DNA of 64,000 nt from Octopus sinensis (lineage: Eukaryota). The position numbers were made by a program, and so were the translations under genes. Positions 38,001-41,000 of this stretch are shown one piece after another; the stretch's first letter is position 1, and each line of letters opens with the position of its first letter. The DNA is taken from positions 14,321,360 through 14,385,359 of the forward strand of contig NC_043019.1 in NCBI RefSeq assembly GCF_006345805.1. Reading direction: 5' to 3'. Under the pieces are notes generated by a model. That model did not search any database. It was not told the DNA's origin and worked only from the letters and a program-made list of their open reading frames with translations.

Positions 38001-41000
38001 ATTTCATTCTTTTCAGGGTCATGTTGTTTTGACAGATTTTGGTTTATGTAAGGAAGGAATTGAAGGTATGGGAACCACCACTACGTTTTGTGGAACTCCT
38101 GAGGTGAGAAACTGTTTCAACAATTGATGATTTTGCAATCCAAGGTCTTAGAACCTTTAGAAATCCTAATGGTAATACAACTGCCGCCACTGTAGTTGTT
38201 CTGTGGAGCCATTGCTATAGCCTGGTGCAGCAGCTATTCTTAGATGTTACAGTGTGCTACAACCATAGATGCCATGCCCAGGGCTATAATAAAAGGCACT
38301 TACCTAAGGTGCTTATGCAGTAGGACTGAACTGAAAACCATGTGATTAAGAAGTGAACTTCTGAACAACACAGTTATATCTGCACCACACACTCTCTCTC
38401 TCTCCTCTCTCTCTCTCTCTCTATATATATATATATATATATATATATATATATATATATATATATATTCTGCCAAATATATACGTTTTATTTACTTTTT
38501 TGTACATTACTTAATCATCGTTATATGTTTTATCTTATATTTAATCTTTCTATAATATGTAATTTTTCTAAATGGTATAATTTAATTTTCCATTATTGAA
38601 TTGATAAAAGGTGGGGTTTTTTTCTAATTTATATATATATATTATAATTTTTGAAATCTGATTTAGTATTTCTAAATTTAATTTTTCCCTGTAAGTTTGG
38701 AATAATATTCCCTCTTATTATTATTACACATACATATATACATATATATATATATATATATATATATATATATATATATATATATATATATATATATATA
38801 TAATTCTAAGAGAGTTAGAGGCTGTGAATCCAACCAACTAAGGGATAATGTCTATCCAATATACTGCAGTAGAATACCCAATTATTAATACATAAGTGTT
38901 TTCTCATTGCATGGCAATTACTCTACTGAATATAATAAATGGGGGAGGGTAAAAAGTTGTTTTTACCTTTAATTTATACAGCAATAAGAAAATTGGGGGG
39001 GGGGGTCGAGAGGTGGCATTCGTCAACTTTTAGACATTATATTATGTCTATATATTTATTTTTTTTAAATAATCATTTTAACAATATACGTACATGTATA
39101 ACAAATTATGCGTTACGTATATAATATATAAAAATACCAGTAATTATTAAAATATATAACGTAGAGCATAGGAGGCAGAATAGTATCTTACAGCTGTTTC
39201 AGCCAAGAGGTCATAGTACCCCACTTTACTTCCATCCCTTCAGTGAACTGAAGTATATGGTAGATAAGTTTAAGGTACTTGGGTGTGCCTCTGGGCTTCG
39301 TCAGAGAGTTTAGAAAGTTCATAAGGTTAAGTTATAAATATAAATACATGAGTGGCCTGGTGCAGCCTTCGGGCTTCCCAGACCCCAGTTGAACCGTCCA
39401 ACCCATGCTAGCATGGAAAGCGGACGTTAAACGATGATGATGATGATAATATGTATATATATATATACATACACACACATACTGGCATTAGAAAGGGCAT
39501 CCAGCCGTAGAAACCATGCCAAAACAGACGTGGACCCTGAACAACCCTTCAGCTGGTGAGCTTCTGTCAAACTGCCCAACCTATATATAAAGAGAGAGAC
39601 AGATAGTAAAATGTGGTACAGGAGGGCAGCCAAAGAAAACAAGGGAAAATATACGGTGGACATGGACTCTCTCACTCCTCATTAGTTATCAACCAAAAGT
39701 CATCACAGTTTTGACCCACAGAGATACATATACATAGATACACACTCTCACATGCACATATTGATGTTCACAAACCAAATCATGTAACAGAAACTTGTCA
39801 AAGAATTTATACTGAAATTAACTCTTCTACAAATCTCCTTGCTTGTGTTGTCTACTTTAATGTTCTACTCTGCTCCATTTCAGTACCTTGCTCCTGAGGT
39901 CTTGCGGAAACAACCATATGACAGAACTGTTGACTGGTGGTGCTTAGGAGCTGTTCTCTACGAAATGTTGTTTGGATTGGTAAATAACAACCATAATTTA
40001 GAAATATTTTTTTTGTGATCAGTGGATTTATTTCACTGGAATTATTATGTTTACAAGAGCTAGACAAGCATCTGTAGCTAGCAGGCCATGGTACTCCAGA
40101 CTGATGACGAGCAAATACTCAGAAACTAGTCTCTGGTTGCAGGCTTAGCTGGATGGGGGTGCTTGTCTCCCCCTTGTAAACATAAGGACACAGGAAATGT
40201 GTCAAGGCCGACAGGAAGCGTTGATGCTTCCTAGGGCTAAATAGCAGTGGTGTGATTCCCTTTATGGGACTGTCACGTTAAGTTGACAGTATACAACTGC
40301 TCAACCATAATTTATATTCTTGTGTAACTTTGCTGTAAGAGTTCTTGATGGTATTTTTTGTAAGATGCATTCTGAATGTGAGTAGCCATGGAGCTTCTGT
40401 ACAACCAGAGACAGCTTGCTACCCCATTCACCCCCAATGTTCTCTCACACTTTAGCTCCCCCCCCCACCATTTCCTAGCGTCAAGCTGATTCTACCCCCT
40501 AAGGGATTATAGGTCTTGCAAGCTGCATGGCAACCTCATCATCATCGTTTAACGTCCGCTTTCCATGCTGGCATGGGCTGGACGATTTGACTGAGGACTG
40601 GCGAACCAGATGGCTGCACCAGGCTCCAATCTTGATCTGGCAGAGTTTCAACAGCTGGATGCCCTTCCTAATGCCAACCACTCCGAGAGTGTAGTGGGTG
40701 CTTTTTATGTGCCACCGGCACAAGGCCAGTCAGGCAGTACTGGCAGTGACCTCACTCAAACCTTTTTACACATGCCACCGGCACAGGTGCCATTAAGTTC
40801 CTTACTAGTGCCAAAGGTGTGTAAAAAAAGCACTTGGTATGCTCCATGACGTACTTGGAATTAGGAAGGGTAGGAGCTGTAGAAACCATACCACAGCAGT
40901 CACTGAAGCATAGTAAAGTCCTTGAGCACATTGAACCCTGCCAAACTGTCCAACCCATGCCAAAACTTGAAACCAATATTGTAATACTTAATCAGTGAGC

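Follow-up and report, generated by a model that had tools for sequence, protein, structure and literature searches.

Hammerhead ribozymes (HHRs) are known from several kinds of animal repeats and genes, and several of these systems are close to the case described here. The non-long-terminal-repeat (non-LTR) retrozymes of metazoans are non-coding units of 170 to 400 nt with a type I HHR, a guanine-cytosine (GC) content below 50% and a target-site duplication (TSD) of more than 4 bp (PMC7229834, PMC7761336); their RNA is predicted to be highly self-paired, they lack a promoter of their own, they occur in molluscs, and a review calls them a kind of short interspersed nuclear element (SINE) (PMC7761336). 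Sm-alpha of Schistosoma mansoni is a dispersed short non-coding retroposon with the type I hammerhead Sm1 (PMC12550524; Ferbeyre et al. 1998, cited in PMC4209133). The satellite-2 hammerheads of newt and axolotl (HHR_Amex1 type; PMC7229834) have a helix III of a single A-U pair with a palindromic tetraloop, the minimal HHRs (min-HHRs) in the pseudo-LTRs (pLTRs) of Penelope-like elements have an extra nucleotide after A9 and palindromic positions 15.2 to 16.2 plus loop 3 (PMC4209133), and the amniote HH9 and HH10 ribozymes (Rfam RF02275 and RF02277) are sense type I HHRs in introns of protein-coding genes. In this study, we have analyzed a stretch of 64,000 nt from Octopus sinensis (RefSeq assembly GCF_006345805.1, contig NC_043019.1, positions 14,321,360 to 14,385,359 of the forward strand; "the window"), which carries a hammerhead motif at 40096-40136 in an intron of an SGK1-like gene. 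Each of the traits listed above recurs in this motif or its host sequence, and our analysis suggests, at a probability of about 80%, that the HHR belongs to a short (~240 to 300 nt), non-coding, structured, SINE-like retroposon related to the metazoan non-LTR retrozymes and is a passenger in SGK1.

The SGK1 locus of O. bimaculoides (L010), whose introns are about 90% identical to the window, served as the orthologue. Window positions 39461-40000 align with L010 16167-16702 and positions 40302-40538 with L010 16690-16924, at 94% and 91% identity, the two flanks abutting on a single 13-mer, CAACCATAATTTA (L010:16690-16702), with 301 nt missing between them. In the window the same 13-mer forms a perfect direct repeat to the left (39988-40000) and right (40302-40314) of the extra 301 nt (40001-40301, plus strand), hereafter copy A, which has a GC content of 44% and a longest open reading frame (ORF) of 33 amino acids. 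Copy A is an insertion with a TSD, made after the split from the O. bimaculoides lineage, and it is recent, because the 301 nt are absent from O. bimaculoides and the 13-mer is single there. A second member of the family, copy B, lies in the same sense in the next-but-one SGK1 intron (42575-43762); it spans 236 nt (43439-43674), has ~67% identity to copy A and a GC content of 47.5%, lacks any sequence 5' of the HHR hairpin, and is flanked by a duplication of ~14 nt (ATGTTATTTATTTA at 43425-43438 and ATGTTGTTTGTATA at 43675-43688), for which O. bimaculoides has a single ATATGTTGTTTGTTTA. The orthologue is thus without both copies and shows intact empty sites, and neither insertion is conserved in position. 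Just upstream of copy B, in the same intron, a 184-nt unit occurs in two tandem copies with a 92% match (42830-43203).

The family was scanned in 160 kb of O. vulgaris DNA (L002 to L009), within about 250 kb of octopod DNA in all. O. vulgaris holds 3'-terminal fragments at L002:8804-8864 (minus strand), L002:15168-15272 (minus) and L007:5810-5890 (plus), together with two truncated copies in head-to-head arrangement, L007:20008-20166 (minus) and L007:20164-20278 (plus; OX597841.1). The junction of this pair, with GAACTGCA on one side and CAGAAAG on the other, falls within the helix III palindrome of the HHR, 7 nt upstream of the predicted cleavage site, and the arrangement resembles the inverted, 5'-truncated, head-to-head copies described for Penelope-like elements (PMC8557442). 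TSDs of 13 to 14 bp, together with shared 3' ends and 5' truncation, are the signature of target-primed reverse transcription, and the element therefore reads as a short non-autonomous retroposon; the general marks of SINEs and non-LTR retroposons, namely, TSDs, a relative with an empty site, and a shared 3' end among copies truncated on the 5' side, are all present. No tandem array was detected round copy A or B with Tandem Repeats Finder, and the other copies in the ~250 kb are solitary, truncated or inverted. Searches for a tRNA-like head with ARAGORN (39000-44500), and by eye for a B-box-like string, returned none, and six-frame translations of both copies matched nothing at an E value of 10 or below in a protein collection that included transcriptome assemblies. 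Beside the family copies in L007, the large ORFs belong to C2H2 zinc-finger genes and encode no reverse transcriptase (RT), and the ORF in L005 has no Pfam match.

The two copies in the window fold alike, each as an HHR-tipped hairpin followed by the hairpins P2 to P4 and a 3' domain of two hairpins with a closing stem. Among the 30 pairs in the six hairpins shared by A and B, 14 are identical, 16 are changed on both sides, and none is changed on one side or broken; without P5b, all seven pairs of which differ, the counts are 14 identical and 9 compensatory. P2 (40155-40173; GGGGG-UGCUUGUCU-CCCCC) corresponds to AGGGA-UGACC-UCCCU in copy B (43525-43539), with 2 compensatory pairs, and P3 (40187-40203; GACACA-GGAAA-UGUGUC) is kept at 43556-43572 with 1. 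P4 (40206-40235) has an outer stem GGCC/GGCU and an inner stem GGAAGC/GCUUCC, the latter with 2 compensatory pairs in copy B (~43576-43606). The 3' domain (40243-40301) consists of the closing stem AGCAGU/ACUGCU round P5a (40257-40269; 2 compensatory pairs) and P5b (40269-40290; 7 compensatory pairs). The closing stem stops exactly at the insertion boundary, 40301, and the 3' domain is the part kept in the 5'-truncated O. vulgaris copies. In the HHR itself, two of the three helix II pairs are compensatory and the sequence of helix I is entirely different, while the letters conserved between A and B are the core positions and loop 2; helix III is palindromic in both copies, ACUAGU in A versus ACUGCAGU in B. 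The minimum free energy (MFE) of copy A is -118.1 kcal/mol on the plus strand (z score -7.6) versus -96.8 kcal/mol on the minus strand, and the z scores of copy B are -4.1 and -2.5, respectively. Since the plus strand folds better than the minus strand in both copies, the strand that carries the HHR is the one under structural constraint.

The original prediction, which placed a sense HHR with an intact core 116 nt past an exon donor, is borne out, with CUGAUGA, GAAA and GUC all in place. An SGK1 exon (39883-39979; tblastn with human SGK1) is followed by a donor GT at 39980, the hosting intron spans 39980-41499 (1.5 kb), and the motif begins 116 nt from the donor in the sense orientation. At 40096-40136 the DNA reads CCAGA-CTGATGA-CGAGCAAATACTCA-GAAA-CTAG-TC-TCTGG. 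In RNA terms, the 5' strand of helix I, CCAGA (40096-40100), pairs with the 3' strand UCUGG (40132-40136) and encloses the core C3-U4-G5-A6-U7-G8-A9 (CUGAUGA; 40101-40107), the 3-bp helix II hairpin C-GAG-CAAAUA-CUC-A (40108-40121), in which the basal C and A are unpaired, and the segment G12-A13-A14, A15.1, a palindromic CUAG loop, U16.1 and C17 (40122-40131). The conserved core of a type I hammerhead is complete (CUGAUGA at 40101-40107, GAA at 40122-40124, A40125-U40130 and C40131), cleavage is predicted between 40131 and 40132, and helix I has 5 bp and a long extension. Helix III consists of A15.1-U16.1 only, plus a sterically impossible C-G, and with the self-complementary ACUAGU it has one or two pairs round a palindromic loop of 2 to 4 nt, which makes no stable hairpin; a helix III this short is typical of metazoan type I HHRs (PMC4209133). 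The motif of copy B, UACG-CCGAAGA-C-AGG-CAAAUA-CCU-A-GAAA-CUGCAG-UC-CGUG (43461-43501, plus strand), has the helix III palindrome CUGCAG and a core that departs from the conserved one by a U4-to-C change (CCGAAGA).

The conserved G10.1-C11.1 pair is missing from both copies, which have a C after A9 and an A before G12; if these basal nucleotides are read as bulges, positions 10.1 and 11.1 are G-C in A and A-U in B. Judging from the two sequences, the C.A at 10.1/11.1 was probably ancestral to both subfamilies. Its origin by CpG decay of a C-G pair was considered and rejected, being possible for copy A, with the sequence context of B unfit. CpG dinucleotides are strongly depleted in copy A (4 observed versus 14 expected) and much less so in copy B (9 versus 13).

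Copy A was compared with N79, a ribozyme derived from Sm1, whose sequence, GGTACATCCAG-CTGATGAGTCCCAAATAGGACGAAAC, was taken from PMC12550524. The aligned stretch of copy A, GGTAC-TCCAGACTGATGACGAGCAAATACTCAGAAAC, is identical to N79/Sm1 at 28 of 38 positions, sharing GGTAC-TCCAGACTGATGA....CAAATA....GAAAC; only 4 of 2,000 shuffles reach this score, and the substitutions are confined to the helix II stem. The loop-1-like GGUAC, located 5' of helix I (40090-40094), and the loop 2 CAAAUA are identical to those of Sm1/N79, a fast Schistosoma ribozyme, the tertiary contact itself being a prediction. Sm1 and copy A thus have GGUAC, CUGAUGA, the CAAAUA loop 2 and GAAAC in common, and both host elements are low in GC. 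Copy A differs from Sm1 in a wholly different helix II stem, the basal C.A in place of G10.1-C11.1 and a far shorter helix III, and its element differs from Sm-alpha in that no RNA polymerase III (pol III) A or B boxes or tRNA-like part were found. Outside the HHR no resemblance to Sm-alpha is apparent, although the two elements were not directly compared.

That the string arose by chance within an unrelated palindromic repeat is very improbable, even though two observations speak for it. The bare pattern CTGATGA..GAAA..GTC, found once, is expected 0.43 times per window and occurs at least once in 31% of shuffles, and is thus not significant; and none of the Rfam hammerhead models (RF00163, RF02275, RF02277 and others) reached its gathering score anywhere in the window or matched at an E value of 10 or below on the 501 nt or the 91 nt round the copy A motif. 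Once helices are required, this changes. A descriptor was made of CUGANGA, a helix II with 3 or more bp, GAAA, a helix III that is short, UH and a helix I with 4 or more bp. It gives 0.05 matches in a Markov-shuffled window, falling to 0.003 if 5 or more bp are demanded of helix I and a palindrome of helix III. Moreover, copy A agrees with Sm1/N79 in loop 1, in the core and in loop 2, and copy B keeps the core positions, a covarying helix II and a helix III palindrome of different sequence. The rarity of the helix-requiring descriptor in shuffles and the match of loop 1, core and loop 2 are the grounds on which we take the motif, from its sequence, to be truly related to the canonical type I hammerhead of metazoans. 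As a calibration of the Rfam searches, an HHR-like motif of O. vulgaris (L006:3571-3647) scores 14 bits with HH9 at an E value of 0.4, below threshold. This motif (plus strand) and another at L008:~20300-20359 (minus strand) have a longer helix III besides a helix II of the G10.1-C11.1 type. When metagenomes were scanned with GANGACNNGCAAATACNNAGAAAC, one chance match (L001) and no HHR came up, and an 11-nt perfect complement of 40129-40139 at 40402-40412 is of a kind expected by chance in 2.5 kb.

The rod with the HHR at its tip that had been proposed from the letters alone is reproduced by folding. The MFE structure of 40040-40190 is this rod (~56 bp; 40045-40185), at -62.6 kcal/mol versus -40.1 +/- 3.8 kcal/mol for shuffles (z score -5.9; 0 of 200 shuffles as stable), and the proposed pairings AGCTA/TAGCT (40076-40080/40146-40150) and the perfect 13 bp of TTATGTTTACAAG/CTTGTAAACATAA (40045-40057/40173-40185) are present, as is AGACAAGCATC/GGTGCTTGTCT (40062-40072/40158-40168), with 10 Watson-Crick pairs and one U.G. 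Only the inner rod (~40075-40152) has an equivalent in copy B (43441-43522), and the outer 24 bp are particular to copy A and not conserved in copy B. The 5' extension of copy A (40001-40074) has no counterpart in copy B; its segment 40045-40070, likewise missing from B, is an inverted copy of 40160-40185 (26-nt arms, 88% complementary), and the 3' strand of the outer rod is homologous to the P2 hairpin and linker of copy B. The GGGGG/CCCCC hairpin (40155-40159/40169-40173), previously put forward as a competing fold, does exist and, from the comparison with copy B, is the ancestral P2, but as an equal second fold it does not hold, because it costs +14.5 kcal/mol relative to the rod.

The predicted tip of the rod is not the cleavage-competent form. 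In the MFE structure AGACUG (40098-40103) pairs with UAGUCU (40127-40132), placing C3-G5 opposite 40127-40129 and burying them together with the scissile site; helix II is firmly formed (pair probabilities 0.97), the helix I pairs reach ensemble probabilities of 0.07 to 0.20, and the competent fold, in which helices I and II are present and the core is unpaired, lies +3.7 kcal/mol above the MFE. Copy A agrees closely with what has been published on metazoan type I hammerheads. HHRs whose helix III is one pair with a palindromic loop are reported to cleave poorly as monomers and to need a dimer (PMC4209133, PMC7229834): the single-pair architecture of newt and axolotl is reported to show almost no activity in the monomer and to be active in the dimer (PMC7229834; Forster et al. 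1988, cited in PMC4209133), and in amphibian HHRs such as those of axolotl, with one pair and a palindromic tetraloop, cleavage is weak for monomers and efficient for dimers (PMC7229834). Copy A stands alone, and copy B is 3.4 kb away, carries the U4-to-C change and has a different helix III palindrome. As a lone monomer, copy A is expected, by analogy and from the modeled fold, to cleave slowly or negligibly, for three reasons: (i) a helix III of one pair with a palindromic loop, (ii) the C.A at 10.1/11.1, and (iii) the competing pairing at the tip.

Compared with the described systems, the element agrees with the non-LTR retrozymes in that its ORFs do not exceed 33 amino acids, its GC content is 44% in A and 47.5% in B, its TSDs are 13 and ~14 bp, and the folding z scores are -7.6 and -4.1. 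Its sequence suggests that it is a further member of the class of HHR-bearing SINE-like elements and retrozymes, and by analogy it would work like Sm-alpha/Sm1, the non-LTR retrozymes and the dimer-dependent hammerheads of newt and axolotl. The amphibian HHRs differ from copy A in that they form large tandem arrays, always have a dimer partner adjacent and keep G10.1-C11.1. The Penelope-like min-HHRs differ in a helix II of 6 to 8 bp, the lack of canonical loops 1 and 2, and linked RT/GIY-YIG ORFs, whereas helix II of copy A is 3 bp long, its loops are canonical, and no RT/GIY-YIG ORF was found nearby. HH9 and HH10 occupy ultraconserved orthologous sites and have a stable helix III, in contrast to copy A, which is absent from the orthologue and gave no HH9/HH10 score. 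Three marks of the comparison classes are lacking: the tandem array of retrozymes (in 250 kb), pol III boxes, and the conservation in O. bimaculoides that would be typical of a domesticated intronic ribozyme.

As a passenger, the ribozyme would act on the RNA of the element itself and cut multimeric or read-through transcripts down to unit length, as proposed for the retrozymes and Sm-alpha (PMC7229834, PMC7761336). The structured 3' domain would probably be recognised by a partner reverse transcriptase, and the element would merely be co-transcribed within the SGK1 pre-mRNA; little or no effect on SGK1 output is expected. Several observations weigh against this account. Retrozymes in the strict sense are tandem arrays of 150- to 450-bp repeats, every one with a type I HHR, that give rise to circular RNAs (circRNAs), while the family as seen here is made up of solitary, 5'-truncated and inverted copies; only two HHR-bearing copies were available, one of them with a mutated core, and blastn, regular-expression and descriptor scans revealed no further HHR-bearing copy in the 250 kb; and no autonomous partner, promoter boxes or A-rich tail was found for the family. 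With respect to the expected inactivity, the penalty of 3.7 kcal/mol is modest and refers to secondary structure only, without tertiary contacts, the core of copy A is fully intact, and its loops 1 and 2 match those of a fast ribozyme. Axolotl monomers with a weak helix III still cleave to a small extent in vitro, 22% in 1 h being reported for the somewhat better of two (PMC7229834), and on sequence grounds some cleavage by the copy A monomer could occur. Finally, the presence of two sense copies in one gene may point to tolerance or use, but a count of n = 2 is no proof.

The original prediction went further and proposed that cleavage could couple the splicing rate to SGK output. In its fullest form, the intronic HHR would self-cleave the SGK1 pre-mRNA co-transcriptionally, in kinetic competition with splicing of the 1.5-kb intron, and act as a newly co-opted attenuator confined to this species. 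The intact 13-nt sense core 116 nt from the donor, loops 1 and 2 identical to those of the fast Sm1/N79, and a long stem I extension compatible with the active fold are in line with it, the amniote intronic HH9 and HH10 offer a precedent (de la Pena & Garcia-Robles 2010, cited in PMC4209133 and PMC7761336), and in Drosophila the spliced RNA is reduced when an engineered N79 sits in a long intron at its 5' end (PMC12550524). The same ribozyme in an intron of ~500 bp gave no knockdown in mammalian cells (PMC12550524), however, and the proposed attenuator needs a fast ribozyme, whereas the helix III of copy A is of the dimer-requiring type (PMC4209133, PMC7229834) in a solitary copy, with no compatible second one. 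The C.A at 10.1/11.1, the concealment of C3-G5 and the scissile site in the MFE structure and the missing Rfam hammerhead match weaken the idea further, and the recent origin of the insertion, absent from the O. bimaculoides orthologue and not conserved, speaks against a regulatory device. Vertebrate introns are, in addition, depleted of retrozymes (bioRxiv 10.64898/2026.07.22.740005), which suggests that active sense copies are harmful and selected against rather than co-opted. We therefore consider the attenuator improbable and a role of the HHR in SGK regulation unlikely.

Two further explanations leave the hammerhead aside. Heavy A-to-I editing is a feature of cephalopod transcripts, and the 141-nt near-perfect hairpin, with its rod of ~56 bp and very low folding energy, could matter as intronic double-stranded RNA, as a substrate either for ADAR or for the production of small RNAs by Dicer/Drosha. 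This is quite improbable, given that the outer 24 bp occur only in copy A and are absent from B, that the hairpin does not pair with a neighboring exon, that Rfam searches returned no microRNA family, and that the insertion is missing in O. bimaculoides. The chance that the locus is an intronic C/D-box small nucleolar RNA (snoRNA), in which CUGAUGA would be the C box and CCAGA/UCUGG would form the terminal stem, is close to nil: apart from the intronic location, it draws on weak cmscan scores for SNORD44 (14.6 bits) and SNORD109A (15.5 bits), at E values of ~0.5, which are far under the gathering thresholds of 35 to 40 bits, and the locus is a recent insertion. We rejected this candidate on the additional grounds that no D box (CUGA) precedes the 3' stem and that the motif spans 41 nt, versus at least ~60 nt needed.

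Animals are well known to carry HHRs on SINE-like elements, on retrozymes and on Penelope-like elements, and a passenger retroposon in SGK1 would accordingly be an example and no new principle. A literature search returned no description of the copy A family, nor of retrozymes, in cephalopods (octopus or squid), and the family appears to be undescribed for this group, for which 235 Hammerhead_1 matches in the giant squid genome have been reported (PMC6962438). The value of the locus lies in the natural experiment it offers, a dated sense insertion with an intact core in one species and an empty site in a sister species; this pair permits a direct test of the effect of a monomeric hammerhead with weak helix III on host pre-mRNA. 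The spread of the family as solitary copies instead of tandem arrays also bears on how such elements are mobilised. The minimal helix III might be made up for by the canonical contact of loops 1 and 2, such that the solitary HHR cleaves a measurable fraction of nascent SGK1 pre-mRNA; if true, a transposon would have delivered to a stress kinase a ribozyme attenuator that is specific to the species. It is a long shot that copy A is a very young co-option attenuating SGK1 in this lineage only, or that the family, dispersed and not tandem, is the first SINE-like, circRNA-yielding hammerhead retroposon of cephalopods.

The host gene is an SGK1-like gene on the plus strand, with kinase exons spanning 24030-45917 (tblastn, human SGK1 query). 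Its nearest named protein is the SGK1-like protein of Argonauta hians, at 96% identity, with which SGK1 of O. vulgaris, O. sinensis and O. bimaculoides shares a 90% cluster. Elsewhere in the window, an inverted repeat at 63045-63242 (86-nt arms, 90% complementary, 26-nt spacer) carries one outward HHR-like motif per arm, the motif at 63167 (plus strand) reading GACAC-CUGAUGA-A-GGCUGG..CCAGCU-GAAA-GG-UU-GUGUU and that at 63120 (minus strand) having the core CUGAAGA; with a long helix II, a bulge after A9 and no helix III, the pair seems, from its sequence, to match the Penelope-like min-HHR type (PMC4209133). A SINE-like repeat of ~400 nt has many copies in the window (6889-7355, 16969-17394, 22821-23252, 25250-25639, 50741-51163, 60729-61147 and others), which show 88 to 96% identity to those of O. 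vulgaris and O. bimaculoides, and the spurious ORFs running through it match annotated "hypothetical proteins" of O. vulgaris. Minisatellite-like tandem units at 14974-15789 and 35176-35700 read as long repetitive ORFs, the latter just upstream of the SGK1 exon at 35786-35908, and CA/TA-rich and CTAT-type microsatellite or low-complexity tracts at 305-871, 19993-21399 and 58610-59089 give rise to long artefactual ORFs.

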